Source: Phaeosaccion multiseriatum (taxonomy: Eukaryota; Protista; Ochrophyta, other classes). From it: a stretch of 64,000 nt of DNA. The notes beneath the pieces are model-generated. The model was not told where the DNA came from. It made no database searches and saw only the letters and a program-made list of their open reading frames with translations. The stretch is from the NCBI GenBank assembly GCA_965112735.1, contig OZ218950.1:434001-498000 (forward strand). Direction: 5' to 3'. Both the position numbers and the translations under genes were made by a program. Position 1 is the stretch's first letter. The number at the start of each line of letters is the position of its first letter. Positions 4,724 through 33,680 of this stretch are shown here, one piece after another.

Positions 4724-6404
4724 TTTCACAACTCCGCGCCCTTCAAACAATCCTCCTTGCACCTCCTTTGCGTTTCTTCAACAGGTCCAAATCCACCTCA
4801 GGGCATAAGGGGCTTCGAGTCCATCCACTGCGTCTGCTCTTTCACTGTCTCTCTCGATCCACCTGAGAAACAGGGTCTTATCCTGACGAGGAGTGACAAT
4901 TGAATGCTTCAGTTTGAAGACATAAGGAGGTTCCCAAGCGCCTGGCCCAAGTGGTAACGACACCAGGGTACTCGAGAACCAAATGAATGCTTGTTACGCC
5001 AACTCGAACGCTTCCAACAAGTCCGCGCCGCCGTCTGAAGTCAGGGAGGGGGAAGATGGGAAGATGGGAAGAAGGGAGGAGCCCAGGAACATGCGATCTA
5101 GTTTCAGTTTCCGTTCATTGGCCCGAGCCTTGTTGCTAATCCCCGTCTGTGGCACCGGGGAAGGGACAGTTTGTGCAAAACACGTACGATAGCAGTGAGG
5201 CGAGAGTGAATTATCGAAATTAAAGGCTTAACGACTTATGTGCCACCTGAGAGGGGGGGAGGAAAGAGGAGTGAAAGGCCCATCACCCATCACCATCAAG
5301 GAGCATACGAGCAATTCTTAAGCTAAGCTCTACCTCTGCGATGCTCCCTTCCATCTGCCCAGTCTGACGAGCCTGCACCTCATGGAAGGCTTGCCATTGC
5401 CAGCACCGGTGCTGATGCCCCTCCCCTCCCCCCTGCCGCACCGCACCAGCTACAACGCGCTGCTGACGACAAGCGCCAAAAACAAAGCACTTGCTGCTTT
5501 CTAGTCCCCCACCAGCTACTGCTGCTGCGTCTGCGGTTGTTGCTCGCTGCTGCTGCGATTGGTCTTACCGCTGCTCGTGCTGCTACTCCAGTGGATTCAG
5601 TCGCCCCGCTCGCCGCCCCTTGCACCCTCCAGCCTCCCTCAGCTTCTATTCCAGCTTCTTCCCTGAAGACGATTGCCTACACCCAACGGAGGATGCTCAC
5701 CCCTTGACCCCCTGCGGGAGCCTAATCGGACATCGTTCCAACGCGTCTTCTCAGCTCGCTCCACGCCCCCCTCTCCCTTCCTGCTTTCTCTGACTCGCTC
5801 GCCCCTCCTACTACGCTGAGCCCACGGCTGTCCTCTCCTCTCCGACTCGACCCTTTTGCTGCCCATCGGTGTGACGGGTGGATGGCGTCGGCCTACATCC
5901 ATAGATACATCCCTTTATGTTCTCCTCTCTCGTGGTCCCTGTCACAGAACACCTTCACTGACTTACAACCGAGTGATGATGGCGTTCAGTTGCTCCTCGT
6001 CGTACACTTTATAGCCCGCCGCCTACCGAGGGGATGGCAGTGGATGGGCCGAGGGGAGGGGGAAGAGGATACACGAGAGAGTGATTACTTAGAGTTCCAG
6101 GTTCCAAGAAGTGTGAACATGAGACAATATGCGACTTATGCTCTTGCTGCTGTACCCACTGCCATCCCCTGTCTCAATCCATCCACCTGCGTGTCCCTCC
6201 CCATCCACTGCCACCGCTTGTCTCAGTCCTAATACCCGTGAGGTGGAGCAATCCTAGCTAAGCGCTTAACACCCCTTCCACCCTTCGCCTTTCACGCCGT
6301 CTCAGGGCAGCGAACGCACGCACGCACGCACGCACGCACGCATCGAACGAATGAAAGCACCGCACCACACCACACCACACCACACCACACGCGCACTCAC
6401 TCAC

Positions 6405-13300: not shown

Positions 13301-16300
13301 CAGGGAGGAGGGGGGGGGCGTCGAAAGGGAGCAGGCAGCGGCGAGGGGGGTGGTAAGAAGGAGAAGAGGAGAGAGGGGCCGAGGAACGACGATGAACTTG
13401 ATGACAAGTATTCCCCCGCGGAGGTGGCGGGGGGGGGGAGGTTAGACGCACAGGGTATTCTGTGGGCAGGCGAGGAGGACGAGGAGAAGGAGAGTGGGGG
13501 GGATGAGGACGACGAGGACGAGGACGAGGAGGAAGAGGAAGAGGAAGAGGAGGAAGATGAGGAGGAGGAAGACGACAGCGGTGAGTCTGACGAGGAAGAG
13601 GAGGATGAGCAGAAGCAGCGGCAGCAGCAGAAGAAGAAGACAACGAAGAAGAACGGGGTGGAGACGGCGATTCCCTACGTGCTGGAGTGTCCGCAGAGCA
13701 TGGATGAGCTCCAGGATCTCCTTGACGAGTTTGCGCACACGGCGGAGGACATCAACACCGTCGTGGACAGGATCGTCAAGTGCCATAGCGTCAAGCTAGA
13801 CACCAAGAACAAGGCAAGTGTGGTGCTGGGGAGGGGAGGGGAGGGCGTTGTACAAGAGATGGAAGGCGGAAGGGAAGGCTCCTTCCTACCTTCGTCTGTG
13901 GCCATTCTTGCTCCCACCCTCTCCCTCCAATCGTGCAGCTGCTGTCTCACCGACTGCTGCTGCTCTGCTGACTAACCCCTGTCCTTTTGGCCCCTTCTTG
14001 TGGACCCCTCGCCTGCACCCCCCCCCTTCTCTCTTGTTCTCACCCTCGTCCAACAAACTCTCCCAACTCACTACTCACACTCACACTCACACTTGTCGCA
14101 CCACCAAACCGTGTACCACCAACAGGAGAAGATGCACAACTTCTACGACGTGCTGCTGAAGCGCCTTGTGCGTGTCGGAGATCAAGCCCTCCTCCTCCCC
14201 AAGGGGGGCCCTCTTGATGGTGTGAGTCAGCTCGACTGCCTGGCGAGTGTCTTGTACAGGGTTACACAGGAGATGCCGGAGGCGGCGTCTTCGCTGTGGC
14301 ATAGGACGATGGGGGGGATGCAGAGGAGGCTGGCCAAGGTGGGTGGGTGGGGCGTGGGGGGTGAGAGAGGGAGAGAGGAAGAGACGGAGGGAGGGAGGGA
14401 GGGAGGGAGGGAGGGAGGAGAGAGCGGGAGAGAGAGTGAGGGAGGGAGGGAGAGGGGACAGGGGGAGAGAGAGAGAAGGAGAGAGAGAAGGAGAGGAAGG
14501 GCAAGAGAGAGAAAGAGAGAGATGGAGGGGGAGAGAGACAGAGAGAGAGGGAGAGACAAGGAGAGGGGGAGAGAGAGAGAAAGAGGGAGGGACTTGGTTC
14601 GAGGTTGCAAGTGTGTGGGCGCTGTTCTCCACACTTCTGTTGAAGGCAGAGAGGCGTCTCTCCCACTGAGCATCTCATCCCCCTTTTACCCCCCTCCCCT
14701 CTCCTCCGCTCCCTCGTGCCCAACCATCCACTGCCATCCTCTTCCTGTCTCCTCTCCTCCCCTCTCCTCCCCTCCCTCGTGCCCATCCATCCACTGCCAT
14801 CCTCCCTCCCTCGCTCCCTCCCACCCCCCCACCCCAGTCACTGCGTGATCACTTTGAGGGCATTGCGCCTTCCTCCGCTCGAAGCCGCTCCACCTGGCCC
14901 TCGCCTGGCCACCTCCTTCTCCTCCGTCAGATGGGCCACCTATTCCCCACCACCGACTACCGACACAGCGTGGTCACCCCAGCCCTTCTCTACTTGGGTC
15001 AGTGTCTTTCTCAGTGCCCCGTTCAGAGCTGTGCCGACCTCAGCACGGGTGTGTTTTGCTGCGGCTTGTTGCTGCAGTTCACGCTCCCTGCCGGCAGACT
15101 GTGCCCCGAGGTGTTTGCGTTTCTCACCTCGGCGTTAGCACTCTTCCTGCCCCCTCCCGCTCCCAAGGCTGTGGATGGCAACAGAGGGAAGAAGGGAAAG
15201 GCCAAGGCCAAGGCCAAGGCGAACGGGAAGGGGAAGGCGAAGGCAGCAGATGGCAAGGGCGAGAAGGGCGAGGAAGAGGAGGAAGGAAGGCAGCGTATGG
15301 CCATGGCGAGGGAGGAGAGGGAGGCGTGCATGATTACTCCGGCGCTCCGCTCGGCCCCCCTGGACTTCTTGAGAGGGAGCGCGAGTCAGTGGGATGGGAA
15401 TGGTGAGGAGGGAGGAGACTCTGCTGGTGCTGACTCGGGCTCGGGCTCGGGCGCTTCTTCGGTGGGGGCACTTGACCTGCGTCAAGCACTTGCTGCTGAC
15501 GCCGAGGGGGAAGCGGGGGAGGGGGGGGCGAGGTGAGTGAAGTGCGAGAGGGGTGGGTGGGTGGGGGGTAAGAGGGAGGGGGTGAGAGCGGGAGAGAGGA
15601 AGGGCGGGAGAGAGAGGGGGAGAAGGGGAGAGCCAGGGGGAGGGGTGAATGTTTTTCGTTTAGCCCTGTTCACGGCCATCCACAGCCTCATTCCACCAAA
15701 CCAACGCTGCTTCCTCCCCCTCCCTCCCTTATCCCACCAACAACAACTTCAGGGCCTCCTTCGCCTGCTGCACCCTGGCCGCCATCTACCGCCTTCTCTA
15801 CGCGTCCCTCGCTGGCCTGAAGCGGCGCTGCGTGGCCGTGCCCGAGGTGTTTGCCCTCCCCCTGGCGGTGCTCGAGAAGGTGCTGCCCCAGCAGGAGCCG
15901 CCGCTACCCCAGGCCCTCCAGGTGAGGGAGCCGTGTGACAGTCGGTGGGAGGGGATGGGGAGGGATGGTAGTCGATCGGGCGGATGGGGGCTGATGACCT
16001 GCTTTTTCGCTGACTTACATGTACGTCCAACCACACCATACCACACCGCCGCTGTACGGGGCTTCTTCTTCCTCCTCCTCCTCCTCCTCCTCCTCCTCCT
16101 CCTCCTCCTGTCTGTCTCTTGCTCGTGTGGCTGGATGGCAATGGATGGCAGGTAATGCACGTGAAGCTGGCAGAGGCCCTGACCTCAACAATGTCCACCA
16201 TGCTGGGGCTTGGCAGCGGTGAAGAAACAACTACCCCACCTGTAACCGCCACCGCGGCTGCTGACGAGGCCGCCGGTGCTACACAAGTTGGTGATACGCT

Positions 16301-17052
16301 GCGACTCCCTCTGGCGTGGCAGGCGAAGGGCGTGTCCTCGATCAAGGGACTGGCACCCAAATTCCAGGAGAAGTACACAATGAGGAAGGACGGGGACTTG
16401 GACAGGGACGCGGCCAAGATCAAGCAGATGCAGCGCCAGGTGAGGGGGGATGGCAGTGGATGGAGGAGATGGCAGTGGATGAGGAGGGGGGTGGCGGTGG
16501 ATGAGGGGGGGGCTGCGTGGCACGCTTTCCTTGCATGACTTGCTCGCTTGACTTTGCTTGACTTGACCTCGATGTTTGCTGCCAAAATATTTGCCCCTGT
16601 ATGCCCAACAGGTGAAGCGAGAGAAGAAGGGCGCCGCCCGTGAGCTCAAGAAGGACTCCACTTTCCTCGAGCAGCAGCGCTGGAAGGACAAGAGGGAGGA
16701 GGAGGAGACACGCAAGCAGAAGTGGAGGGAGAACCTCACCTGGCTAGAGGGCGAACAGAGCACTTGGAACCAGCAGGTGGGTGGGTGGGTGCGGCCAATT
16801 AAGCGCCTTGGATAGAAAGTGCCTCTCTCTCTGTCTCTCTCTCTCTCTCTCTGCGTGTCTGTGTGCTCTGACTCTCCCTCTCTGTGTGTCTCTGTCCCTC
16901 TCGCTCTCTTCGCCCTCTCCCCTCTCCCCCGTTGCCCGTCCACTACCATCCATCCCTCCCCTCCCCAGGTGGGCAACAAGAAGGCACGTCACCTCATCAA
17001 GGGGGGTGGAAGTGCGCAAGTCAAGAAGCCGACTGTGGGCAGGGGCCACTGA
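9304..17052 (+). CDS. NOP14: Nucleolar protein 14 (U3 snoRNP/SSU processome), multi-exon
   Basis: Exons encode NNPFE..KKKHDI, LLQDYKQNKKANSFDDRRFGE, KSRKEVLDEIIAKSK, DDYDKMMREF..ATDRTKTAEE, LFPTTDYRHSVVTPA, PKFQE and KREKKGAARELKKDSTFL; stop at 17052. Confidence 0.92.
11586..11682. repeat. Intronic minisatellite, ~25-bp unit (TCGCTTGACTTTGCTTCGCTTGACA) x ~4
   Basis: Directly visible tandem units in a NOP14 intron. Confidence 0.8.
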
Positions 17053-17439: not shown

Positions 17440-18680
17440 GAGCCCCAGTCGAGGGTTTCCGCTGCCTCATGCTGCGTCATCGTGGCTCGAAGGAGGGTGC
17501 ATACGTGCATACCTGATCTCCCGCTGGGAGAGGGCGCGTTGAAGGGCGAGGGACAGTTGCTGGCGCAGGAGGCCCTTGATGGGGCCCTTGGCTGCCGCCG
17601 CTGCTGGGCCGAGCCCCCGTGATGCCTTATGAGTGGCCATCGCCTCGATGAGCTCGTCCGCTTGGTGGCCCAGCGTGCCGTGGTCTCGAGTGCGATGCAT
17701 TTCAGGGTTGAAGTCCCGGGCAGGAAACTGCCCAGGTAATGAATGCGTTTGCGCTCTTCAGCGGCGACTGCTGCGTGGCCTGGAGTCGTGGATGCCAGGG
17801 CCACGTGTGTGGGTGCGGTGGGGTTGGTGACGGTGATGTCGAAGAGGAGGTTGCTCCGTAGGGGCGCGTCTGCTCCCGGGAAGCTGCCTGCTGGGTATGT
17901 GAGGTCCATCCGGAGGTCTCGTCCCGCCCTGGTGCCCGTGGGGCCGTCGGAGCAGGTCTGGTCCTCGACGCGTGCTGCTGTGCATCATCCGCCCGAAGGC
18001 CTTGACGACCAGGTGGTGGGTATGATTGTGGAGCCCGGTGCACGCGCAGATGATGGCGTGACTGGTGCTTGCCGTACAGGTGCATCCTGTGCCAAGGCAG
18101 GGTGGGGGGGGGTCTGCGTATGGGGTGGTGATGCCGAGGTTGCGACGCACGGCCATGGTCCATTCTGCTGGGGCCATGGTGTTGTGGCCGTGAGGGAGTG
18201 ATCCGAGGAAGGCCATGGCGCCCCGTCAGCGCTGGGAGTAAAGGCGGGCTGCTGCCATGTCCTGTGTCTCCTCTCCCCTCTGTGCCTCGGCCGGTGTGAC
18301 GTCGATGGTGCCAATGCTCTGCGTCAGTTCCTCGTGGCGGTGTTTGCCGATGTGGTTGATGATGGCCTTCTGGACGCCGTGGGTCGGTTGGCGGCCTGCC
18401 TGATGGCTTCTGCGTACGTTGCGTCTCGCTGTGTCTTGGGCTTGGTGGTCAGGCGGGTCGAGTGCGCGTGAGCGGCCCTCGTCGTACTGATCCTGCCCCA
18501 CTGCTTGGATGAGGGGGGCCTCAGGGATCCCCTCCTCGCGCTGGAGGTTGACGCTGTCGGCGACGCTCTTGAGGACTCCGTTGGTGAACAGCTGGTCCGG
18601 TACTCAAGAGCGTAGCCGACAGCATCAAACTCCTGCGCGAGGAGGGGATCCCTGAGGCCCCCCTCATCCAAGGAGTAGGG
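17440..18680 (-). mobile_element. CRE-like non-LTR retrotransposon copy A (truncated at both ends, degenerate, 5' fold-back)
   Basis: Diverged homologue of 21260..22430 (RLE region: MDLTYP, DITVTNPT, AEERKR.HY) with frameshifts. Inverted arm at 18603..18681. Confidence 0.9.
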
Positions 18681-18688
18681 GTGCGAGA

Positions 18689-19556
18689 TTTATATTAGAG
18701 CTTATGGGCTCAGTATTGGTGCTCTTGAGGTGAGTGGTAACCATGAATAGACGTGTGTGTGTGGTGTGGTGATGGAGAGTGATGTGCAGGAGGAGGAGAT
18801 GGCAATGGTGGTAGAGGGGGGAGGCAAGGATAATAGGGGAGTGGGAAGGAATCTTGTGTAAGCTATCCTAGTGTGGATGGTGTGGTGGACAGGTCGGTGA
18901 CTAACTGTTGGTGCTATGCTGTGCACTGATGGTCTCTATGTCTGCTGTCGTGCTTACTCCTACTCCACAGGCGTCCCCTCCGTCGATGGCTCCCATGAGC
19001 CCCCAGTCGAGGGTTTCCGCTCCTCATGCTGCGTCATCGTGGCTCGAAGGAGGGTGCCATACCTGATCTCCCGCTGTGAGAGGGCGCGTTGAAGGGCGAG
19101 GGACAGTTGTTGGCGCAGGAGGCCCTTGATGGGGCCCGTGGCTGCCGCCGCTGCTGGGCCGAGCCTCCTTGAGGCCTTGTGGATGGCCATCGCCTCGATG
19201 AGCTCGTCCGTTTGGTGGCCCAGTCTGCCGTACGTCTCGAGTGCGATGCACTTCAGGGTTGAAGTCCCGGGCAGGCAACTGCCCAGGTAATGAATGCGTT
19301 TGCGTTCTTCGGCGGCGGCTGCTACCAGGCCACGCAGCAGCCGCCGCCGAAGAGCGCCAACGCATTCATTACCTGCGTAGTTTTATGCCCGGGACTTCAA
19401 CCCTGAAGTGCATTGCCATCGAGATGTACTACGGCAGACTGAAAGTTAGAGAGGAGGACGAGTCTTTGCGCACCCGGCACCGCCCCCCTGACGGTTCCGC
19501 GCACACTCCAACCCCCCTGTTCTCATCTCCCCGCGGTAGATACCAACGGGTACCCG
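18689..19556 (-). mobile_element. CRE-like non-LTR retrotransposon copy B (5'-truncated, inverted arm, TSD)
   Basis: 3' UTR begins right after GTGCGAGA (18681-18688); (GGG)GTGCGAGA recurs at 19557-19567, followed by target repeat sequence. Confidence 0.9.
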
Positions 19557-19642
19557 GGGGTGCGAGAAGCAGTCGCAACAGGGAGGACTTTGCCAGGGCC
19601 ATGGAGCTGTGACCAAGAGGTGTTCTGTTGAGGAGTGCGAGA

Positions 19643-20742
19643 ATTATATTAGAGCTTATGGGCTGAGTATTGGCGCGCTTGAGGTGAGTGGTAACCATGT
19701 GTAGACGTGTGTGTGTGGTGTGGTGATGGAGAGTGATGTGCAGGAGGAGAGGAGGGCGATGGTGGTAGAGGGGGGAGGTTAGGATACAAGGGAGTGGGAA
19801 GGGAGTGAAGTGGATCGTGGGGTGTGTGATGTGTAAGCTATCCTAGTGTGGATGGTGTGGTGGACAGGTCGGTGACTAACTGTTGGTGCTATGCTGTGCA
19901 CTGATGGTCTCTATGTCTGCTGTCGTGCTTACTCCTACTCCACAGGCGTCCGCTCCGTCGATGGCTCCCATGAGCCCCCAGTCGAGGGTTTCCGCTGTCT
20001 CATGCTGCGTCATCGTGGCTCGAAGGAGGGTGCCATACCTGAGTGCGGAGTCCTCAAGAGCGTCGCCAACAGCATCTCGACCCGCATGCCTCGTCGTACT
20101 GATCCTGCCCCACTGCTTGGATGAGGGGGGCCTCAGGGACCCCCTCCTCGTGCAGGAGGTTGACGCTGTCAGCTACGCTCTTGAGGACTCCGTTGTTGAA
20201 CAGCTGGTCCGGAAGGGCGGTCTCTTGGGGCCCTCCTCTGCGTGCGATGCGACTGAGCAGGGGGGGAAGGGTGAGCATCTTGCTGCCAAGGTATGCCGCT
20301 GGGGCGATGGCGTCGAGGCTGGTGAGACCGAGGCCTCCATGGCGCCGTGCCGTGTGGATTTGCAGTCGCTGTGTCTCCGTCCATGGCTCCTCGGGTGCAT
20401 CAGCTGCCTGCTCCAGAGGGGGGGCATCGGGGAGTCGCATGATGTGGGCAAGGGTCGCCCCGTTGATGCGGTCTGCCCTGCTGCCGAGGGCGCGCCTGAA
20501 GATGTTGGGGGCGATGGCCCCTCAGTGCGGAGCGAAGTATACCTCCAGAGAAAATACGTAGTGCACGCATACGTAGTGCATGTAGCTGATGTATTCCGCC
20601 CCCCGCGTCTTCCGCGCAAATACCTTATCCTTGGAAGTAAATTTCGCTCCGCACTGAGGGAGCGCGCATCGTGCCTTCTTCGGAACCTTAGCGCATGGCC
20701 GGGTCTGGGTGAGTACCATCCGGCAGTGGTCCTCGACCGCGT
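19643..20742 (-). mobile_element. CRE-like non-LTR retrotransposon copy C (5'-truncated, internally deleted)
   Basis: 3' UTR begins right after GTGCGAGA (19635-19642). Internal deletion/inversion near 20041-20080. Non-element sequence at 20519-20742 before the host repeat resumes; no clean TSD. Confidence 0.87.
20519..20660. mobile_element. MITE-like 142-bp element with 18-bp perfect inverted termini
   Basis: CCCTCAGTGCGGAGCGAA (20519-20536) and TTCGCTCCGCACTGAGGG (20643-20660); no TSD seen. Confidence 0.55.
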
Positions 20743-20908
20743 GGATGTGACAAGAAGCGGATCCAAGGAGGACTTTGCCTGGCCCATGGAGCTGTGGTGA
20801 AGAGGTGTACTGTTGAGGGCTGCGACAAGCAGCGGATCCAAGGAGGACTTTGCGTGGCCCACGGAGCTGTGGTGGTACGGAAGAGGTGTACTGTTGAGGG
20901 GTGCGAGA

Positions 20909-23900
20909 TGTATATTAGAGCTTATGGGCTCAGTATTGGAGCGCTCGAGGTAAGTTGTAACCATGTGTAGATGCGTGTATGTGTGGTATTGATGGAGCGT
21001 GAGGTGGAGGGGAAGAGGATGGTAAGGGTGGTAGAGTAGAGGATAATGGGGAATGGGAAGGGAGTGAAGGGGGGAGGAGGAGATGAAGGGGTGTGGGAAG
21101 GAGTGAGGTGGTGGAGGTGATATGTGAACTAGCCTACTGTGGGTGGTGCGGGTGACAAGGCGTGACTAACTGTGGTTGCTATGCTGTGTGCTGATGGTCT
21201 CGCTGTCTGCTGGCTGGTGTACTCCTGCTCCTCAGGCGGCCGCTCCGTCGATGGCTCCCATGAGCCCCCAGTCGAGGGTTTCTGCTGCTTCGTGCTGCGT
21301 CATGGTGGCTCGAAGGAGGGTGCCATACCTGATCTCCCGCTGTGAGAGGGCGCGTTGAAGGGCGAGGGACAGTTGTTGGCGCAGGAGGCCCTTGATGGGG
21401 CCCGTGGCTGCCGCCGCTGCGGGGCCGAGCCCTCTTGATGCCTTGTGGATGGCCATCGCCTCGATGAGCTCGTCCGTTTGGTGGCCCAGTCTGCCGTACG
21501 TCTCGATTGCAATGCACTTCAGGGTTGAAGTCCCGGGCAGAAAACTGCCCAGGTAGTGGGTGCGCTTGCGTTCTTCGGCGGCGGCTGCTGCGTGGCCTGG
21601 CGTGGTGGAGGCCCGTCCCACGTGAGTGGGGGCGGTGGGGTTGGTGACGGTGATGTCGCAGAGGAGGTTTCTCCGCAGGGGTGCGTCCGCTCCCGGGAAG
21701 CTACCTGCGGGATAGGTCAGGTCCATGCGTAGGTCTCGGCCTGCTCGGGTGCCCGTGGGGCCGTCGAAGCAGGTCTGGTCCTCTACACGTGCTCCTCCAA
21801 TGCCCACGCTGTGCATCATCCTCCCGAAGGCCTTGACGAGGAGGTGGTGTGTGTGGTTGTGGAGGCCGGTGCGGGGGCAGATGGTGGCGTGGGTAGTGCT
21901 TGCCGTGCGGGCGCAGCCTGTGCCAAGGCAGGGTGGGGGCGGGTCCGCGTATGGCGTGTTGACACCGAGGTTGCGACGAAGGGCCATGGTCCATTCTGCG
22001 GGGGCCATGGTGTTGTGGCCGTGGGGGAGCGCTCCGAGGAAGGCCATGGCGCCCCTTCCTCGCTGTGAGTGGAGTCGGGCTGTTGCCATTTCCTGTGTCT
22101 CCTCTCCCCTCTGTGCCTCTGCCGGTGTGACGTCGATGGTGGCGATGCTCTGCGTCAGCTCCTCATGGCGGCGTTTGTGGATGAAGGTGGTGAGGGCCTT
22201 CTGGACGCCGTGGGTCGGTTGACGGCCTGCCTGATGGCTCCTGCGCACGTTGCGTCGCGCTGTGTCCTGGGCTTGGTGGTCAGGCGGCTCGAGTACGCGT
22301 GAGCGGGCCTCGTCGAACTGTGCCTGACCCACTGCTTGGATGAGGGGGGCCTCAGGGACCCCCTCCTCGTGCAGGAGGTTGACGCTGTCGGCGACGCTCT
22401 TGAGGGCTCCGTTGGTGAACAGCTGGTCCGGTAGGGCGCTCTCTTGGGAGCCTTCCCGGCGTGCGGTGCGGCTGAGCAGGGGGGAGGGTGAGCATCTTGT
22501 TGCCAAGGTATGCTGCTGGGGCGATGTCGTGGAGGCTGGTGAGGCCGAGGCCGCCGAAGCGCCGTGCCGTATGCATTTGTAGGCGCTGTGTCTCCGTCCA
22601 TGGCTCCTCTTGTGCATCTGCGGCCTGCTCCAGAGGGGGGCATCGGGGAGTCGCATGATGTGGGCCATTGTCGCTCTGTTGGTGCGGTCTGCCCTGCTGC
22701 CGAGGGCGCGTCGGAAGATGGAGGGGTCAATGGCTCTCGCCAGGTGTGTGAGCCTGGCTGGGAGGCATTGGAGGAGGACGAGGGTGGCCGCCTGGGTGTT
22801 GTCCCACTCGCTGCAGTGTTTGGCGAGTTGGAGGTAGCCCCTGGGGTCTTCTTGGCCGAGGATGTTGCGGAGGTACTCTTCGATGTACTCCTCCGTGCCG
22901 ACGGGGATGCCGGCTACCACGGTACCCTCGGTGGCAAGTGTGGCGCCCTGCCGTTGGGCGTGGTCCCTGTCAGCCTGTGTTGGCTGCTTGCCTTTGCCCA
23001 TGAGGTAAACCGTTTTCCTCTCGTTGAACTCGAGGCCCAAGCCTCGGAATTGGGCTTGGAGATGGGCATGGCGTGGGGCGTAGGTCTGTAGGGGTGCGTC
23101 GGGTTCCAGCTGGTCCATGAGGTCGTCTGCGTAGGCGGAGATGGTGGGGCGGTTCGCTGCGGTGTCGGCTGTGTTCTGAACTTTCAGCACTGGGTGGATG
23201 GCGGCTGCGAACATGAGAGGCCCTTCTGGTGCTCCTTGGTTGACTCCGGAGCTCTGGTGGATGGTCTGGGTGCCGTCTGGTGTGAGGGCGTTGTGGGCGG
23301 AGGCGTGGGAGAGGCTGGCGATGGCGTAGTTGATGCCTGCTGGGTCGATGGTAGGGAGTGCTCCTGAGGCTAGGACGCCTCTGGCACGCGACACGCGGGT
23401 GTAGGCCTTGGTGATGTCATGCAGCACGACGGTTTTGCCGGCATCGTGCGCTAGCTGGGCTGCTGCGGCGTGTGTTTCCCCTCCGCCTCTGACCGCTACC
23501 GCTAGCTGTCCTGCGCTTCTGAGCTCTGGGCCCACCCTGTCCGCGATGAGCTTCATGTGACAGCTCTCCACGAGGCTGCGGTAGAGGTTGGGGGATGTCA
23601 CAGGACGCGCTTTCTCGCCGAGGGCTGCGGCGCTGGTGCTGAACCACCGTTTGGCGAGCTGTGGAGGCAGTGGAGTGTCCCCCGTTCGGAGCAGCTCGTA
23701 GGTGTCAGTCAGAGCCTCCACGATTGCGTACTCCTGGGGGCTGTCCGGGGGTACTTGACGTGGCTCGCCCTGCGCCCGTCTGCTCCTTGGCCCTTCCAGA
23801 AGTTGACCCTCCGGTAGGTCAGCAGCATGGCTGTGCTGATCTCCTCTCTGGTGACGTCGTTGCCATTCTCGGGGTGCTCCTGCACCTGGGTTCTGGCGTA

Positions 23901-26900
23901 CTCCCTGGCTGCTGCTGCTGCTGTGTTGATCTCTTCGAGGCTCTCGTCGACGTGCGCTTGCTGGAGGCGTCTAAAGGTCTCGTGTGTGGGAGGGAGGTGG
24001 CCGTCTCTGCTCTTTGTGCTGAGCCTCGCCGCGGCCTTGTGCAGGCCTCCGGGTTTGGTGAGCAGGTGGGCGCAGGTTTCTCTCCGTCGCTCCTCTGTCT
24101 GTGCCTGTGCTGGGGGTGGTGGGCGGCGTGCGTGTGCTGTGGCTATCGCTGCTTGTGCGAGTGGGGCGATGTCGAGGTCGAGGACCATCTGTATCCGCTG
24201 CTGGCGGCTGTTGGCTCCGTCTTTAGAGAAGAGCATGGCAGGGAGGAGGTGGTGGAAGACATCCCATGCCAGAAGGGTGTGGAGGGTGGCGTCGGTGGGG
24301 CCGTTCTTGTGGGCCCTCAGCGCCCTGTTCCAGTTGTTGAGCGCTCTTTGCTGTAAGCTGATAATCGAGCTGACGTGGCGGGGGTTGCACTGCGCTACTG
24401 TCTCAAACACGAGTGTTGAGAGGATGGTACCCTGCGGGTCCAGGGCCCCTAGGCGGAGGACGTTTGGGTGCTGCATGGGCCATCCTTCCTCGGGTGTATC
24501 GTCGTTGGCTGGCCCTTCTCCGTCCCCTCCGTCCCCGCCGCTACCTCCTTGGCCTCTGCTCCGTCCTCCTCCCCCTCGTCTCGCTGCTGCTGCTGTGGTT
24601 CCTTGCGTGCGTGTGCTATCTCCCCCCTGCCCTTTCTCTCTGAGGTCCCCTCTCTGCTGCTGCTCCTTGTCCGTTTCCTTCCCCCTCCCTCGTCCTCCTC
24701 TTCCTCCTTCTACTCCACTTGGCGCTGCTGCGATTGCTCCTCCTCCTCCTCCTCCTCCTCCTCCTTCCGCGTGCCCTCGCCCTCCTCCTCTGCCCGTGGG
24801 GGTGGTGGGTTGGTACGGGTTGAGCCTGGCCGTTGCTGTCGTGTGCTGGGGCGTTGCCGTACGCGACGGGTCCTCGTTTGGGTCTGGGCCTAGATAGGCG
24901 TTCTCGAGGTCGTTGAGGGGGCCTTGGTAGGCCGATGCTGCGTTGCCTTGGGTGAGGATGGTCCTGAGGGCGGGGATGGCTCGTTGAGCTTGGTAGCCAG
25001 CCATGCAGCCTTGCGCGGGGCAGGGGAGGTTGCCTGGTGGTATGACGGGCTGCTGGTTGGCTCTCCTCAGTGTGGCTTGGTCGTTCAGGTGGTGAAGGAG
25101 GCACGCGGGGTGAACGGTGTGTTGGCAGCGTCGGGTGCGTACTGGCCACTCCGTGGTTGGTGCGATGAAAGGGGGGTCCGCGTCTGACATGCATATGCAG
25201 CATATCGGGGCTGGGGGGGCGGTAGGTTGGGGTGGGGGTGTGTGTCGGGTGGTGGGGGGTGGCTGGGACTGGCGGCGTCGCCCTTGGCTGGCCTGCGCGT
25301 GCTGCTGATGCGACTCTCTGCGCTCCCTCGCTAGGCGATCCCTTGCGCGGCCCATAGCTCTCCCTCCTTGTGCTGTGATGGCCTGCTCGATCGTGTGCCG
25401 GTAGCAGGGGTTGCGGCAGTAGGGGCAGAGGTGGTCGTTGCGGTTGGGGTACCTGCTCATGACTCCCAATGCGCAGTGGTTGTGCACGTGATGTTCGCCT
25501 TCGTGCATGGCGACTTGTGCTTGGCCAGTGAGCGGTTCCATACACACCGGGCAGTTGGGTAGCTCCTCGTTGTTGGTGGGGTCGCCTCCTCCTTCTCCTT
25601 CGTCACCTCCTCCCGCTGCTTGCCCTTCCCCTCCTTCTGCCGCTGCTTCCCGTGCCAGTGCTGGGCGCTCTCCTCCGCCTCTGCTGTTTTCGCCCTCTTC
25701 CCCCCCTGCTACTACTCTTCCTTCGCGGTCTCCTCGTCCCCCTCCCCTGTGTCCCGCTCGCTCTCCTCTCCCTCCTCCCTCCTGGTCGTGCTCTCGTGTA
25801 GTGTCTGTCCCACCTGCTCTTGTCGGTGGGGGCATGCTTCGAGCTCGTTGGATGGTTGGCGGTGCTGGTAGGCTTGCGGCTTCGTGTGCTCGTATGCAGG
25901 CGTTGCATAGGGGTTGTCGTAGGCCTGATTGCGGGAAGCGGGTAAGGAAGGATCTGCCGGAGTTTCGGTGGGCCAGGTTGCCGCATCCACTTGTGCAGTC
26001 CCGGAGCTGGTACGTATTATTCTGTGGTCCGCTCTGTGGGCCGTTGGCGCGGTACCACAGGATTGACGCGGCCTGGGGGTGGTGTTCGCGCATCCATCGG
26101 TCCCACTCTCTGCCGCGGTTCGGGTGGTGGCTCGACTGGTGCCTGATGAGGCGGTCTCTTGTGTTGCCTACCGTGACGAAGGTGTCGTGGCATTCGCCAA
26201 AGTTGCAGAGGATGCCCCCTTGAATGTTTCCATTGTCGGGGTGTCTTCGGTACACTCGGGCGTTGTTGGGGTTGTCCTCCGGTGTTGGTGGGCTGGGTGT
26301 GGTTGCGTCGCTTTGGGCGGGGGGTGGTGGCGGTCCTGGTGCGGTTCCCCGGGGGGCCTGTCTCGTGCGTAGGGCGAGGGCTTGCCCCGGCGCCCACCAC
26401 GGTGTGGCCATGGTGTTGGCGAAGGGGGAGGTGGTGGTGTTGTTGGTGTGGTCGCGTAGGGCGTGGCCGTAGCGCTCAACGATGGCTTGGACGTCGGGTA
26501 ATACCGCGATGAGTTCCTCCTGTCGTGAGGCGGTGATGTAGTCGTTGACCAACTCGTTGGAGGTGATCTCTTGGCCTGCGAGCGTGTGGGCATAGGCCTC
26601 CACGATCTGTTGCCATCCAAGGGGGTAATCTCCTCCCCCCATGTGGTCTTCCGGGGGTGGTGGGGGGGCCTCCGCTCCTTAGAGCTTGTCTGAGGAGGGG
26701 CATATAGAAGTGCGAGTTGGTAGGCGGGAGCGCCGCGTCGCGCTGGTGGCGTATGGTGTTGCTCCATGTCGTTGGTGCGTGTCCATGCGTGTCTGTTTCG
26801 AGTGATGCTGTCTCTTCCTCGTGCGTCGTGGGGGGTGGTCGTACGAGGTCGGCGATGGCCTCGGCCGTGTTGTGGTGGGTCAGTTCCGTCGCGGTGAGGT

Positions 26901-27299
26901 TTAGGCTTGCGAACTCAGCGCTGATGCGTCGGCTGGCGGATGCTGGCGCTTGTTCGTTGAAGAAGAGGTTCGGGTGTTGCCGTATGGGGGTCGTGGCTGT
27001 GAGGTGGGTGTCTTCGTATTCGTCTTGGAGGATGGAGACGATTTGCTCTGTGATCCCGTGTGCGTTTCTGTGAGTTGACGCGTTGGTGGTTTGGGCTGGA
27101 TCTGAGGCTCGGAAAGTGGCGGTTGGCCTTTCCGGGCTGCGTGCTCGGGGGGTCCTGCTTCGTCCCCTTGGCCTCGTGGTTGGCTGCATGGGTGCTGGGC
27201 TGGTCGCTGTGGGGGGTGGTGCTGTTGTAGGGCCTGTTGTCTCGCTGGCGGGCGTGGTAGATCTCCTGGCGGCTGGTGCTGTTTGTTGCCGTGTCGAGC
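20909..27299 (-). mobile_element. Near full-length CRE-clade (RLE-type) non-LTR retrotransposon, copy D, 6391 bp, 8-bp TSD
   Basis: Flanked by GTGCGAGA at 20901-20908 and 27300-27307; removing the element and one octamer restores the host repeat (..RCTVEGCEKQSQQGG..). One long frameshifted ORF; no poly(A) tail. Confidence 0.95.
21232..27299 (-). CDS. Retrotransposon polyprotein: C2H2 finger, two RING-like fingers, reverse transcriptase, Cys/His knuckle, restriction-like endonuclease (frameshifted)
   Basis: RT motifs KARPV, QLAV..GGE, HDITKAY, GVNQGAPEGPLMF, SAYADDL, GLEFNERKT, VAGIPVG; RFGGLGL in an alternate frame; C-x4-C..H-x3-C; RMDL..CDITV..AEERKRTHY..IETYGRLG. RING-like CPVC..HVHNHC..CPYC and CCIC..CQHTVHPAC..CPAQGC. 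Frameshifts near 26650, 23730 and 22480-22640. The frame stays open to the 5' junction. Confidence 0.88.
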
Positions 27300-29566
27300 G
27301 TGCGAGAAGCAGTCGCAACAGGGAGGACTTTGCCTGGCCCACGGGGCTGTGACCAAGAGGTGTACTGTTGAGGGGTGCGATAAGGAGCGGAAGCAAGGTG
27401 GGATGTGCCTGAGGCATGCACGAGTGAAGAGGGAGGGAGCGGAGCAGAAGGAGGAGATTGCCCGTTGTACGCCTGTGCCCAAGCGAGGCGCTGCGACGGA
27501 CATCAATGGGATAGGAAGCAAGAGGGCGAAATGCGCCCCTTCAATGCCTGGGGGAGAGGAGGAGAGGAAGGAGGCACTGGAGGATGGGAATGGGGTGGGT
27601 TTGCTGGCGGGGCTGGGGCTTCATGTCGGGGACGAGATTCAGCTGCCCTGTGGCCTGTGGAGAGGGCTGGAAGATGGCGGGGCTGATGCTGCCACGGCCT
27701 TCTGTGGCCGTCGGGACAGGGGGCTATCGAATGGCGTGGTGGTGGCTGTTGTGGGCCGGAGTAAAGTGTTGCTGCTGCCCCACTGCGCTTTGCGCACAAA
27801 GAGGAAGGGGGCGAGCCTGGAGAGCACGATCCGAGGCTTTGTGTCTGCCTACCACCGCTATCGCTCAGGAGAAGTAGGGAAGGATGATGATGGCGACAAG
27901 CTGAAGGAGGAGTGGGCGGTGCTGGAGGAGAGCATGGTGACGGCGAATGAGAAGAAGAGGCGCGGACGGAAGGCGCTGCGAGCGTGCGTGCGTGTGGAGG
28001 GCCCTGCTGCTGATACCTCGGGACTTGAGATTTAGTGACCCGATGGCCTTCCGTCCGCCGTATCGCCTTCGCCGTGGTGAAGCTTGAGGCTTGTTTCGTA
28101 CAGTGGATGTGAAGAGTAGAGTAAGTCAATACACGTGATGGACCTTGATGAAAACAGTCGCCACCCACATCGCTTCACTGCTGTGGAAGGGGCCGAGTAA
28201 CTGTGACTTGGGGGCTTATGAACGTGCTGTGTGTGAATTTTGATGTATTTCTACGTGCAGTGGTGAGTTTCGTTACGAACAAGAGTGTAAATGAGGTGTG
28301 AGGGAGGGGCTCACTCCGAGTCAGCACCGCCCAGCACGGGCCCGGCACCAGCATCCTCCTGAGAGTGCGAGGAGCTGCTACTAATCCCTGAGTCATCCAT
28401 AGACACGCTGTTGCTCATTCGAATCCCTCGCCCGTGTGGGCGTTGCTGAGGGGGGACAGACCATGGACACAGGGGCGGGGGAGGAGGGGGAGGAGGAGGG
28501 GGAGGGAGATGGCAGCGGATGGCCCGCGGGAAGTACGTGCGGGGCCGCGCTACGCTCCTTCCTGCGAGAGGTATGTAGTCTTTCTTTAAGCCTGGGTAGA
28601 CTCATGTTAGCGCATGTTATGTATCACCAACTGCTAAGCATATACGATGTATCACCGCCTGCTTAGCGCTAAGCCGTCGGCACTTGTATGATGGAGGGAT
28701 AGCTCTATCTCTCTCTCCCTCCATGTCCTCTCTTCCACCTCGAAGTGTAAGCACTCACTCTCTCTCTCCTTCGCCCCTCCCCCCCCGCCCCCCTTTGTTT
28801 CCCCTTTGCCCCCCCCCCCCCTCCCGTCATCCCCATCCACTGCCATCCCGTCCTGCCCCAGCTGGTGGCCGGTCTGAGCAACACGTGGCCGCATGGGGAG
28901 GTAATTTGCCTGATGAAGGGACACGTGGACGACGGGAAGGCCGTTATGCACCTCCATGATCACAAGGCCGCCCTCGCCAGTGGTGGTGATACAGCAGTTG
29001 GTGATACAGCGGCAGTAGCAGCAGATGGGCAGCCGGAAGAGTACAGTAGTTGTGAGGAAGCTCTTGTTCTTGACACAAGGCAAGCGTTGTATCGTCCTCA
29101 GTCTTTGGGCCTCGTAAAGCCCCAAGAACCCGCCGGGAGTGTTTGCTCTGTGGGACTCCGAGCTGGGCTCCTCGTCCAGATCCAATAAGCTGAAACTGAA
29201 TCTAAATCGCATGATCGTGGACCCCTTCCTTCTCCCTTCCTTCTTTCTCTCCCTGCCCTCCCTAAGAAGTGTCTTCCCCTCACATCCCTCTTTTGATTAT
29301 TCTCTTTAACAACCTTCTGTCCTCTTCTTGTCCAAGACCACTTGGGCTGGACGCAAGGGGATCTATCCTCCTTTGTCTTCAGTCGATGCGCGGGCTTGGA
29401 GGCCTTCAAGTTGGCACATAAGCATTCGACTTCTCTCTCTCCTCTTGACCACGACAGACAGTGAAGGAAGGGCTGTAAGAGCCTTCTTGTCCACGGGGGA
29501 GGGCTTATATGCTTTTGAAGAAACGCGAAGGAGGTGCAAGGAGGATTGTTTGAAGGGTGCGGAGTT

Positions 29567-30937
29567 ATGAGAATGCGGAAGACGTGTACTGTTGAGGGGT
29601 GCGACAAGCAGCGGGTCCAAGGAGGACTTTGCCAGGGTCATGGAGCTGTGACCAAGAGGTGTACTGTTGAGGGGTGCGAGAAGCAGTCGAAACAGGGAGG
29701 ACTTTGCCTGGCCCACGGGGCTGTGGTGAAGGGGTGTTCTGTGGAGGGGTGCGACAAGCATCGGGTCCAAGGAGGACTTTGCCAGGGCCATGGAGCTGTG
29801 ACCAAGAGGTGTAGTGTGGAGGGGTGCGACAAGCAACCGCAGCAGGGAGGCCTTTGCCATGGCCATGGAGCTGTGGTGAAGAGGTGTACTGTTGAGGGGT
29901 GCGACAAGCAGCGAGTCCAAGGAGGACTTTGCCAGGGCCATGGAGCTGTGGTGAAGAGGTGTACTGTTGAGGGGTGCGATAAGGTACGGGTCCAAGGAGG
30001 ACTTTGCCAGGGCCATGGAGCTGTGGTGAAGAGGTGTACTGTTGAGGGGTGCGAGAAGCAGTCGCAACAGGGAGGACTTTGCAAAGGGCACGGGGCTGTG
30101 GTGAAGGGGTGTACTGTTGAGGGGTGCGATATGGTACGGGTCCAAGGAGGACTTTGCCAGGCCCATGGAGCTGTGCGGAAGAGGTGTACTGTTGAGGGGT
30201 GCGATAAGGTACGGGTCCGAGGAGGACTTTGCGTGGCTCACGGAGCGGTGGTGGTACGGAAGAGGTGTACTGTTGAGGGGTGCGAAAAACAACGGAAGCA
30301 AGGTGGGATGTGCCTGAGGCATGCACGAGTGAAGAGGGAGGGAGCGGAGCAGAAGGAGGAGATTGCCCGTTGTACGCCTGTGCCCAAGCGAGGAGCTGCG
30401 GAGGACATCAACGGGAGAGGAAGCAAGAGGGCGAAATGCGCCCCTTCAATGCCTGGGGGAGGGGAGGAGAGGAAGGAGGCACTGGAGGATGGGAATGGGG
30501 TGGGTTTGCTTGCGGGGCTGGGGCTTCATGTCGGGGACGAGATTCAACTGCCCTGTGGCCTGTGGAGAGGGCTGGAAGATGGCGGGGCTGATGCTGACAC
30601 GGCCTTCTGCGGCCGTCGGGACAGGGAGCTATCGAATGGCGTGGTGGTGGCTGTGGGCAGGAGTAAAGTGTTGGTGCTGCCCCACCTCGCTGTGCGCACA
30701 AAGAGGAAGGGGGCAAGCCTGGAGAGCACGATCCGAGGCTTTGTGTCTGCTTACCACCGCTATCGCTCAGGAGGAGCAGGGGGGGATGATGATGACGACA
30801 CGCTGAAGGAGGAATGGGCGTTGCTGGAGGAGAGCATGGTGACGGCGAATGAGAAGAAGAGGCGCGGACGGAAGGCGCTGCGAGCGTGCGTGCGTGTGGA
30901 GGGCCCTGCTGCTGATACCTCGGGACTTGAGATTTAG
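29567..30937 (+). CDS. WRKY19-like Cys/His zinc-finger repeat protein, copy 4 (10 repeats)
   Basis: ORF 29534..30937, ATGs at 29567 and 29573; ten repeat units. Confidence 0.82.
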   Translation: MRMRKTCTVEGCDKQRVQGGLCQGHGAVTKRCTVEGCEKQSKQGGLCLAHGAVVKGCSVEGCDKHRVQGGLCQGHGAVTKRCSVEGCDKQPQQGGLCHGHGAVVKRCTVEGCDKQRVQGGLCQGHGAVVKRCTVEGCDKVRVQGGLCQGHGAVVKRCTVEGCEKQSQQGGLCKGHGAVVKGCTVEGCDMVRVQGGLCQAHGAVRKRCTVEGCDKVRVRGGLCVAHGAVVVRKRCTVEGCEKQRKQGGMCLRHARVKREGAEQKEEIARCTPVPKRGAAEDINGRGSKRAKCAPSMPGGGEERKEALEDGNGVGLLAGLGLHVGDEIQLPCGLWRGLEDGGADADTAFCGRRDRELSNGVVVAVGRSKVLVLPHLAVRTKRKGASLESTIRGFVSAYHRYRSGGAGGDDDDDTLKEEWALLEESMVTANEKKRRGRKALRACVRVEGPAADTSGLEI

Positions 30938-32465
30938 TGACCCGATGGCCTTCCGTCCGCCGTATCGCCTTCGCCGTGTTGTTTCGAGTAGTGGGTGTGA
31001 AGAGTAGAGTAAGTCAATACACGTGATGGACCTTGATGAAAACAGTCGCCACCCACATCGCTTCACTGCTGTGGAAGGGGCCGAGTAACTGTGACTTGGG
31101 GGCTTATGAACGTGCTGTGTGTGAATTTTGATGTATTTCCACGTGCAGTGGTGAGTTTCTTTACAAACAAGAGTGTAAATGAGGGCTCAAGATTTCGTTC
31201 GCGCGAGGTAGGGGCTCACTCCGAGTCAGCACCGCCCAGCACGGGCCCGGCACCAGCATCCTCCTGAGAGTGCGAGGAGCTGCTACTAATCCCTGAATCA
31301 TCCATAGACCCGCTGTTGCTCATTCGAATCCCTCGCCCGTGTGGGCGTTGCTGAGGGGGGATAGACCATGGACACAGGGGCGGGGGAGGAGGGGGAGGAG
31401 GAGGGGGGGGGGGGATGGCAGCGGATGGCCCGCGGGAAGTACGTGCGGGGCCGCGCTGCGCTCCTTCCTGCGAGAGGTATGTAGTCTTTCTTTAAGCCTG
31501 GGTAGACTCATGTTAGCGCATGTTATGTATCACCAACTGCTAAGCATATACGATGTATCACCGCCTGCTTAGCGCTAAGCCGTCGGCACTTGTATGATGG
31601 AGGGATAACTCTCTCTCTCTCCCTCCATGTCCTCTCTTCCACCTCGAAGTTAAAGCACTCATCCTCTCTCTCCTTCGCCCCTCCCCCCCCGCCCCCCTTT
31701 GATTCCCCCCCCCCTCCCCCCCCCTCCATCCCCATCCACTGCCATCCCGTCCTGCCCCAGCTGGTGGCCGGTCTGAGCAACACGTGGCCGCATGGGGAGG
31801 TAATTTGCCTGATGAAGGGACACGTGGACGACGGGAAGGCCGTTATACACCTCCATGATCACAAGGCCGCCCTCGCCAGTGGTGGTGATACAGCAGTTGG
31901 TGATACAGCGGCAGTAGCAGCAGATGGGCAGCCGGAAGAGTAGTTGTGAGGAAGCTCTTGTTCTTGACACAAGGCAAGCGTTGTATCGTCCTCAGTCTTT
32001 GGGCCTCGTAAAGCCCCAAGAACCCGCCGGGAGTGTTTGCTCTGTGGGACTCCGAGCTGGGCTCCTGTCTAGATCCAATAAGCTGAAACTGAATCTAAAT
32101 CGCATGATCGTGGACCCCTTCCTTCTCCCTTCCTTCTTTCTCTCCCTGCCCTCCCTAAGAAGTGTCTTCCCCTCACATCCCTCTTTTGATTATTCTCTTT
32201 AACAACCTTCTGTCCTCTTCTTGTCCAAGACCACTTGGGCTGGACGCAAGGGGATCTATCCTCCTTTGTCTTCAGTCGATGCGCGGGCTTGGAGGCCTTC
32301 AAGTTGGCACATAAGCATTCGACTTCTCTCTCTCCTCTTGACCACGACAGACAGTGAAGGAAGGGCTGTAAGAGCCTTCTTGTCCACGGGGGAGGGCTTA
32401 TATGCTTTTGAAGAAACGCGGAGGAGGTGCAAGGAGGATTGTTTGAAGGGCGCGGAGTTGTGAGA

Positions 32466-33680
32466 ATGCGGAAGAGGTGTACTGTTGAGGGGTGCGAGAA
32501 GCAGTCGCTACAGGGAGGACTTTGCCAGGGTCATGGAGCTGTGACCAAGAGGTGTAGTGTGGAGGGGTGCGACAAGCAGCGGGTCCAAGGAGGACTTTGC
32601 CAGGGTCATGGAGCTGTCGTGAAGAGGTGCAGTGTGGAGGGGTGCGACAAGCAGCGGGTCCAAGGAGGACTTTGCCAGGGCCATGGAGCTGTGGTGAAGA
32701 GGTGTACTGTTGAGGGGTGCGACAAGCAGTCGAAACAGGGAGGACTTTGCAAAGGGCATGGGGCTGTGACCAAGAGGTGTACTGTTGAGGGGTGCGATAA
32801 GGTACGGGTCCAAGGAGGACTTTGCCAGGCCCACGGAGCGGTGGTGGTACGGAAGAGGTGTACTGTTGAGGGGTGCGAGAAGCATCGGCAGCAAGGAGGA
32901 CTTTGCCTGGCCCACGGGGCTGTGGTGAAGAGGTGTACTGTTGAGGGGTGCGAGAAGCAGTCGCAACAGGGAGGACTTTGCAAGGGCCATGGAGCTGTGG
33001 TGAAGAGGTGTACTGTTGAGGGGTGCGAGAAGCTTCGGAAGCAAGATGGGATGTGCAAGAGGCATGCACGAGTGAAGAGGGAGGGAGCTGAGCAGAAGGA
33101 GGAGATTGCCCGTTGTACGCCTGTGCCCAAGCGAGGAGCTGCGGAGGACGTCAATGGGAGAGGAAGCAAGAGGGCGAAATGCGCCCCTTCAATGCCTGGG
33201 GGAGGGGAGGAGAGGAAGGAGGCACTGGAGGATGGGAATGGGGTGGGTTTGCTTGCGGGGCTGGGGCTTCATGTCGGGGACGAGATTCAGCTGCCCTGTG
33301 ACCTGTGGAGAGGGCTGGAAGATGGCGGGGCTGATGCTGCCACGGCCTTCTGTGGCCGTCGGGACAGGGAGCTATCGAATGGCGTGGTGGTGGCTGTGGA
33401 GCGGAGTAAAGTGTTGCTGCTGCCCCACCTCGCTGTGCGCACAAAGAGGAAGGGGGCGAGCCTGGAGAGCACGATCCGAGGCTTTGTGTCTGCTTACCAC
33501 CGCTATCGCTCAGGAGGAGCAGGGGGGGATGATGATGACGACAAGCTGAAGGAGGAGTGGGCGGTGCTGGAGGAGAGCATGGTGACGGCGAGTGAGAATA
33601 AGATACGCGGACGGAAGGCGCTGCGAGCGTGCGTGCGTGTGGAGGGCCCTGCTGCTGATACCTCGGGACTTGGGATTTAG
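32466..33680 (+). CDS. WRKY19-like Cys/His zinc-finger repeat protein, copy 5 (8 repeats)
   Basis: ORF 32427..33680, first ATG at 32466; eight repeat units. Confidence 0.82.
   Translation: MRKRCTVEGCEKQSLQGGLCQGHGAVTKRCSVEGCDKQRVQGGLCQGHGAVVKRCSVEGCDKQRVQGGLCQGHGAVVKRCTVEGCDKQSKQGGLCKGHGAVTKRCTVEGCDKVRVQGGLCQAHGAVVVRKRCTVEGCEKHRQQGGLCLAHGAVVKRCTVEGCEKQSQQGGLCKGHGAVVKRCTVEGCEKLRKQDGMCKRHARVKREGAEQKEEIARCTPVPKRGAAEDVNGRGSKRAKCAPSMPGGGEERKEALEDGNGVGLLAGLGLHVGDEIQLPCDLWRGLEDGGADAATAFCGRRDRELSNGVVVAVERSKVLLLPHLAVRTKRKGASLESTIRGFVSAYHRYRSGGAGGDDDDDKLKEEWAVLEESMVTASENKIRGRKALRACVRVEGPAADTSGLGI

Follow-up and report, generated by a model that had tools for sequence, protein, structure and literature searches.

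A family of R2-like non-LTR retrotransposons with a Zf_WRKY19 coding repeat as its very probable preferred target in Phaeosaccion multiseriatum

In the ochrophyte Phaeosaccion multiseriatum we found a family of R2-like retrotransposons that lack long terminal repeats (non-LTR) and are of the restriction-like endonuclease (RLE) type. It is very probably site-specific and has as its preferred target the protein-coding repeat of the zinc-finger family Zf_WRKY19. The analysis started from a stretch of 64,000 nucleotides (assembly GCA_965112735.1, contig OZ218950.1, positions 434,001 to 498,000; hereafter the window), in which a single gene of this family holds four insertions, copies A to D, all in one orientation. 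An earlier note on this DNA had proposed a sequence-specific RLE-type element that uses a multicopy protein-coding repeat as its target. The flanks of the element throughout the genome strongly support this proposal, and the tabulation of flanks that the note had called for places most copies at the same site and not at unrelated sequences.

Junctions in the window and across the genome

Within the window, the 18-mer TATATTAGAGCTTATGGG has exactly three matches on the + strand (18691, 19645 and 20911; chance expectation 0), and each of the three element 3' ends is preceded by GTGCGAGA plus two nucleotides, TT, AT and TG (18688, 19642 and 20908). All three junctions could be read directly, with the 3' ends of B, C and D lying antisense right after GTGCGAGA, as the earlier note had it. 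The target-site duplication of D is exactly 8 bp long (GTGCGAGA at 20901-20908 and 27300-27307, the adjoining bases being unlike, g/c), again in agreement with the note, and that of B, for which 8-11 bp had been given, measures 11 bp (GGGGTGCGAGA at 18678-18688 and 19557-19567). Copy A ends at the GGGGTGCGAGA that it shares with B, so that the claim of a 5' end abutting the same site also stands. B and C occupy adjacent 75-bp repeat units of the gene and D lies two units further on; four insertion events have thus shattered one gene of the zinc-finger family. Over the aligned 3' part (3' untranslated region (UTR) and adjoining coding sequence, BLAST), B is 82% and C 77% identical to D, which confirms that the 3' UTR of D is unlike those of B and C, and D itself is 97.8% identical to a full-length copy elsewhere in the genome. 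The presence of old (B and C) and young (D) copies at the same site indicates that the specificity is long-standing. D lacks ~340 bp at its 5' end and hence is not full length. Its 5' end was considered as the terminus of the family and rejected: the sequence is unique in the genome, and the true full-length 5' end was located instead.

Genome-wide, the 20-mer 3' terminus gave 108 exact matches and 138 with at most two mismatches, compared with 0 for the reversed control, and flanks were read for all 108 exact termini. Some 88-90% of these copies share one insertion point, to the nucleotide, in the repeat or its duplicated core, and all of these are antisense. About 77 of the 108 lie in a recognisable Zf_WRKY19 unit, directly after the codons for G-C-(E/D) plus A; about 18 follow the 5' end of another copy together with the same duplicated core (tandem or nested); and ~11-13 are off target at unrelated sequences, some with clean duplications (TGTCAGCGAGA on contig 11, GAGTGAA on contig 4 and ATATCGACA on contig 12). 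The strict flank GTG(C/T)G(A/G)(G/C)A followed by NN is present in 80 copies. Of the first 101 junctions to be tabulated, all have A at position -3, 100 have G at position -6, and 86 have TG as the two bases after position -3.

The preferred target comprises 11-15 nt, GAGGGGTG(T/C)GA(G/C)A^AG, and encodes E-G-C-(E/D)-K in 75/81-bp units. The 3' junction is precise and splits the Lys codon behind its first base, as read on the host coding strand, which makes the element always antisense to the host gene; past the element, the interrupted unit continues with AAGCAG or AAGCAT. The 5' side is variable, with truncation, inversion and target duplications of 0-16 bp (34 of 58 copies have direct repeats of 7-16 bp, and the others show no repeat or a small deletion). 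Since insertion recreates the site, copies accumulate in head-to-tail order and in adjacent units of a single gene. The octamer GTGYGAGA occurs eight times outside repeats in the window and is unoccupied in every case, from which we conclude that the recognised site is longer than 8 nt.

The host repeat matches Pfam Zf_WRKY19 (PF24906), a tandem array of 24-residue Cys/His units (E = 8e-52 for ten units and 3e-46 for eight units). Intact open reading frames (ORFs) of 342-467 aa are present in the family, a 200-aa tail is common to five paralogues in the window, and the tail of the disrupted gene is >90% identical to those of intact paralogues. Homologues with 40-50% identity and the same Pfam domain exist in oomycetes, diatoms and plants. 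The element occupies three host subfamilies, the TGC type of contig 1, the TGT type of contig 8 and the GAA type of contig 13; for contigs 1 and 8 the ratio of nonsynonymous to synonymous divergence (dN/dS) is ~0.5 at a dS of ~0.3. The paralogues in the window were discarded for estimating selection, as their values (dN/dS 0.5-1.4) come from very low divergence and are uninformative, and the comparison of contigs 1 and 8 was used instead. At least 277 units matching a strict pattern are unoccupied. In a sample biased towards loci with insertions, occupancy was 50% for TGT-GAG, 32% for TGC-GAG, 15% for GAC and 8% for GAT codons (Fisher p = 0.04 for GAG versus other codons and 0.001 for TGT-type versus TGC-type units). 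Within the bias of this sample, such values fit a cognate TGT-GAG site and a partial protection by codon change. In the contig 13 subfamily (…CSVEGCE, with a GAA or GGA codon), insertions are seen at the same position at C13:3014545, 3159553 and 3164412 (C plus number denoting the contig). Some metagenomic Zf_WRKY19 proteins also contain a GIY-YIG nuclease domain (PF01541).

Mechanism and alternative explanations

By analogy with R2, the nuclease of the element would nick the host coding strand at GAGA^AG in the target GAGGGGTGTGAGAAGCAG, and cDNA synthesis would be primed by the freed 3' OH where the RNA ends in ...AAUAUACA. The other strand would then be nicked imprecisely, 0-16 nt upstream, which would give rise to the duplication. 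The start of the full-length RNA may lie ~8 nt into the upstream target copy (CACACCCC), just upstream of TTCTTTTTTTT. Even in TGC-type sites, the 5' end of full-length copies is flanked by the TGT-type GGGGTGTG, which in some cases has merged with the site through a microhomology; transcription therefore seems to have begun within the upstream target of a TGT-type donor. The piece carried along may aid 5' joining by homology, and transcription might be driven by a promoter in the copy that comes before in a tandem array. As the element is antisense to the host gene, the host transcript cannot serve as its RNA source.

A shared junction could also be inherited, if one or a few ancestral insertions had multiplied together with the repeat arrays through tandem or segmental duplication and unequal crossing-over. 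Such arrays readily undergo unequal exchange, and identical flank-plus-element units with a period of ~4.1 kb at C1:680277-693542 do represent a segmental duplication. As the main cause, such copying is already contradicted and hardly credible: the 100-bp flanks of 80 junctions fall into 69 clusters at >=95% identity, set against element ends that are 97-100% identical (half of all pairs reach at least 97%), and pairs with element ends >=99% identical have a median flank identity of only 0.68. Moreover, 53 truncated copies of 33 to 6276 bp, most of them 98-100% identical to the reference copy, have the same 3' terminus and ~45 distinct truncation points; host subfamilies (C1, C8 and C13) separated by a dS of ~0.3 are all occupied and carry near-identical elements; and off-target copies have duplications of their own. 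Flanks and element ends thus have no common history. Local duplication cannot explain the overall pattern, which results from separate insertion events, as had been argued in the earlier note for the copies of the window. The host family might instead be part of another selfish repeat, in which case the element would follow the known habit of targeting a transposon or satellite. The family is large and clustered, has a weak Pfam co-match to the CxC6 cluster of KDZ transposases, and shows the dN/dS values of 0.5-1.4 among the window paralogues. We nevertheless regard this as very improbable in view of the intact ORFs with their conserved 200-aa tail, the dN/dS between the C1 and C8 subfamilies, the Zf_WRKY19 homologues in other lineages, and the neighbours, which are ordinary genes (such as Nop14, an ion channel and an EML/WD40 protein); neither a transposase nor terminal repeats came to light.

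A different question is what selects the site. RNA-DNA pairing might mainly pick the target, with read-through RNA from copies already in place ending in target sequence, full-length RNA bearing 8 nt of it at the 5' end, the protein nicking only a short GAGA-like core, and homology guiding priming and joining into the repeat. The TGT-type 5' end CACACCCC carried into TGC-type sites and joined at microhomologies would agree with this, as would the common head-to-tail arrays and the off-target sites, which conserve little beyond G-N-N-A at the nick. On the other hand, the 3' junction is equally precise at off-target sites without homology upstream of the core, and copies truncated at the 5' end, which are without the leader, hit the target equally well. 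The octamer GTGYGAGA is expected thousands of times outside repeats and is almost never used there, which calls for long pairing or long protein recognition, and the RNA ends on which pairing would depend are themselves deduced from sequence. Selection of the target mainly by pairing therefore appears rather unlikely, and we are similarly doubtful about a wider version in which the element RNA, not the protein alone, guides both junctions and target homology at both RNA ends directs priming and 5' joining. In that version, transcription would begin ~8 nt into the upstream target copy, in head-to-tail arrays perhaps under the control of the 3' UTR of the copy before it, and read-through would end in the downstream target copy. 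If it were true, this would be a naturally homology-addressed, R2-like integrase working antisense within coding DNA, and the TGT/TGC and GAG/GAC/GAT/GAA variation of the host would be the visible side of an arms race under coding constraint.

Several points weigh against our preferred reading, a site-specific RLE-type family aimed at the Zf_WRKY19 repeat. The tabulated flanks are those of the 108 exact termini, out of 138 with at most two mismatches. Some copies stem from segmental duplication (the C1 array), so that event counts lie below copy counts. Off-target sites retain only G..A (GAGA-like) beside the nick, and such a short core fits protein recognition as well as read-through RNA pairing. 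All copies whose coding region was read are broken or have two long overlapping frames, which leaves present-day activity as no more than a possibility. It has to be kept in mind as well that the nick by the element protein is argued from R2, and that the start and strand of the transcript and the expression of the host gene are presumed from the DNA.

In four full-length copies (C1:613160, 673573 and 770383; C12:3038285), an extra GGTGCTA is found at the 5' junction. Their four sites all differ, and one, with the 9-bp duplication ATATCGACA, is not in any repeat; this looks like one source lineage and four events.

The element, its protein and its relatives

The full-length element is ~6.7 kb long (about 6.73 kb), and 30 full-length copies have the common 5' end ...CACACCCC(T/A)TC-T7-8-CTGCTTAAGACAGGGCCACCATGG. 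Its 5' and 3' ends are unrelated in sequence and there are no terminal repeats. The family profile matches the reverse transcriptase (RT) of human L1 ORF2p and of R2 at 2e-14 to 1e-9 and group II and retron RTs less well, so that, judged by these profile matches, the RT is of the non-LTR (long interspersed nuclear element, LINE) type. C-terminal to it, the nuclease region shows the conserved motif order C..C..H..C, H, E, (M)D, D(I/V)T, K..(H)Y, in which C, H, C, H, E, D, D, K and Y are (near-)invariant among relatives. An AlphaFold2 model of the last 269 residues has a mean confidence (pLDDT) of 86.9, and in a Foldseek search of the PDB its top seven matches are R2 retrotransposon proteins without exception, with cap-snatching PD-(D/E)xK nucleases and Prp8 coming next; the C-terminal domain is accordingly predicted to be an R2-like restriction-like nuclease. 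No Exo_endo_phos or other apurinic/apyrimidinic endonuclease (APE) match, and likewise no Myb or RNase H domain, was found in the ORFs of D and two full-length copies. D has frameshifts, and the three full-length copies inspected contain two long overlapping frames or several shorter ones. With Rfam at E <= 1, no R2-like 5' ribozyme was detected in one full-length copy. Read depth over the element is ~50-100x that of unique sequence, and the element is also present in a second sample of the same organism.

Upstream of the RT, RING-like fingers (best match at 25413-25556 on the - strand; zf-RING_2, E = 1.1e-5, slightly below the curated cutoff) are accompanied by other Cys/His motifs, which is unusual for such elements. 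The 3' UTR also contains, on the host-sense strand and 40 nt past the junction, a consensus 5' splice site up to which the host frame is open (GAG|GTAAGT in D at 20947-20955, GAG|GTGAGT in B at 18727-18735 and in C at 19681-19689), and an acceptor-like CTTAAGCAG| is present at the full-length 5' end. Mimicry of an intron was rejected, since the frame after splicing would be 0, 1 or 2 in 6, 11 and 5 of 22 full-length copies, respectively; the frame is thus kept no more frequently than chance would give, with no in-frame rescue.

The nearest relatives, obtained by an exhaustive HMMER search, comprise 727 matches, none of them named, and the best are 29-32% identical; the best ten clusters are single metagenomic or assembly contigs, and the ESM Atlas annotates relatives only as 'RVT_1, eukaryotes'. 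Neither the RT ORF nor a 12-sequence profile retrieved a named relative in word-based protein searches. On the contigs of three relatives there was no Zf_WRKY19 motif, nor any Rfam family at the ends. One relative, on a contig of GCA_040384045.1 (32% identity), has the same 40-bp sequence at both contig ends in an AT-rich genome, which suggests tandem copies or a repeated target of its own.

With a non-LTR RT, a constant 3' end combined with 5' truncation, and target duplications of variable length, the family has the hallmarks of non-LTR elements that insert by target-primed reverse transcription. CCHC and PD-(D/E)xK motifs after the RT, the lack of an APE match and a repeated target hit in one orientation place it in the RLE group. 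Its target is the Zf_WRKY19 coding repeat and not a spliced-leader RNA gene or telomeric repeat, as would be expected in the CRE clade, a label that the earlier note gave the element and that finds no support in its target or in the unnamed relatives; nor does it show the 28S rDNA site and the N-terminal zinc finger(s) plus Myb of the R2 clade, its flanks being zinc-finger gene repeats. R2 is an RLE element specific for 28S rDNA, for which structures are available (8GH6, 8IBW-8IBZ, 9DOU, 9NL2-4). Both share an RT followed by a CCHC and PD-(D/E)xK nuclease, R2 being the best structural match of the C-terminal domain, as well as a precise 3' and a variable 5' junction with duplication, the lack of poly(A), a fixed orientation, a multicopy target and tandem or truncated copies. 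R2 is inserted in 28S rDNA and co-transcribed with its host gene, whereas the element described here is antisense within a protein-coding repeat; in addition, no Myb domain and no ribozyme like that of hepatitis delta virus were found in it (see above for the copies searched), its coding region is much longer (about 6.4 kb) and includes RING-like fingers, and its RT resembles that of R2 at the profile level only.

Reviewed targets of site-specific non-LTR elements are the genes for rRNA, spliced-leader RNA, tRNA and small nuclear RNA (snRNA), as well as transposons, microsatellites and telomeres (PMC4640811; PMC13580325). CRE1/CRE2, SLACS, CZAR and NeSL/Utopia are early-branching RLE elements with a strict single site in a small multicopy gene (PMC4640811). 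They resemble the present family in type and in their strict one-site specificity, but their targets are RNA genes (spliced-leader, U2 snRNA) and not a protein-coding repeat. For R4/Dong and some HERO families, the redundant target is a short DNA unit in tandem repetition (PMC4640811), as is the case here; their repeats are non-coding and 2-5 bp long, in contrast to a codon-constrained unit of 75/81 bp that is hit in one defined phase. In trypanosomes, the RHS multigene family contains a coding-region hot spot for ingi/RIME/L1Tc, and more than half of its members have become pseudogenes (PMC7563717). Here too, a non-LTR element has inserted over and over at a single position within the coding sequence of a large gene family, but ingi/RIME/L1Tc are APE-type elements with a 'relative' site specificity, many copies elsewhere and one site per gene, as opposed to an RLE-type element with ~90% of its copies on target in an intragenic tandem repeat that offers up to ~10 sites per gene. 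The literature searched, which did not extend to the inventory of Fell et al., yielded no RLE element aimed at a protein-coding repeat. The remark in the earlier note that such targeting was not known to be described agrees with this search as far as RLE elements are concerned and is too strong in general, RHS being a partial precedent (PMC7563717).

Table 1. Insertions, host sequences and paralogues in the window (positions are those of the window)
Feature	Position	Strand	Description
Further paralogues	160-1188 and 3434-4762	-	
Copy A	17443..18679	-	Internal fragment, reference positions ~5215-6382; 3' end missing
Copy A, main part	17443-18602	-	87.7% identity by BLAST to D and to the full-length copy
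Copy A, inverted 5' piece	18603-18679		Inverted duplicate, 90.9% identity; abuts target core
Target core GGGGTGCGAGA	18678..18688	+	5' junction of A, 3' junction of B, left copy of B duplication
Copy B	18689..19556	-	Old, 5'-truncated; 3' terminus TT + TATATTAGAG..., body to 19331; 82% identical to D
Copy B, 5' side	19325-19441		Inverted piece, then unaligned filler to 19556
Host repeat unit between B and C	19557..19642	+	Starts with right B duplication (19557-19567); ends GAGTGCGAGA, the C junction
Copy C	19643..20518	-	Old; 3' piece 19643-20042 and internal piece 20088-20518, deletion between
Two host Zf_WRKY19 units	20745..20908	+	First (GAGGGCTGCGACAAG) unoccupied; second ends GTGCGAGA, left D duplication
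Copy D	20909..27299	-	6391 bp; 3' end ...CCCATAAGCTCTAATATACA, no poly(A)
CCHC and predicted restriction-like PD-(D/E)xK endonuclease of D	21232..22041	-	C-terminal to RT
RT core of D	22999..23520	-	Contains YADD; Pfam RVT_1 E = 2e-7, above curated cutoff
Upstream coding region of D	23709..26642	-	Cys/His motifs and RING-like fingers; frameshift near 23715 splits off RT frame
Host gene end	27300..28035	+	Right D duplication (27300-27307), last repeat units, conserved C-terminal tail
Intact paralogue	29534..30937	+	Ten Pfam-matched Zf_WRKY19 units and tail; unoccupied target sites
Second intact paralogue	32427..33680	+	

The positions of all features are given in Table 1. The two pieces of C have identities of 76.6-76.9% and 88.6-89.6%. 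The 5' sides of A (18603-18679) and B (19325-19441) are inverted duplicates of adjacent element sequence, which look like products of twin priming or snap-back. Beside the internal fragment of C, at 20519-20650, there is an insert of ~130 bp with terminal inverted repeats of ~18 bp (CCCTCAGTGCGGAGCGAA ... TTCGCTCCGCACTGAGGG), which resembles a miniature inverted-repeat transposable element. A Nop14-like gene with GT..AG introns (12845-17050, + strand) has its 3' end directly left of copy A, and the left part of the disrupted zinc-finger gene as well as the 3' end of A appear to have been deleted.

Meaning for redundant targets and for the host family

R2-type proteins are now being adapted for targeted DNA insertion. 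A divergent element with an apparent site of at least 11 nt is therefore of practical interest, and the family described here forms a very divergent lineage, with about 30% identity (29-32%) to the nearest relatives found and an apparent recognition site of such a length. Site-specific RLE elements are thought to persist in redundant targets that do not code for proteins, such as rDNA, spliced-leader, snRNA and tRNA genes, microsatellites, telomeres and transposons (PMC4640811). According to our results, a domain repeat that lies within the genes of a large family and is under codon constraint can be a multicopy target as well. One gene can then take several hits, as illustrated by the four insertions in a single gene of the window, and the host can alter the site only within the limits of the genetic code, occupancy varying by codon. 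The element may in this way drive the turnover of the Zf_WRKY19 family.

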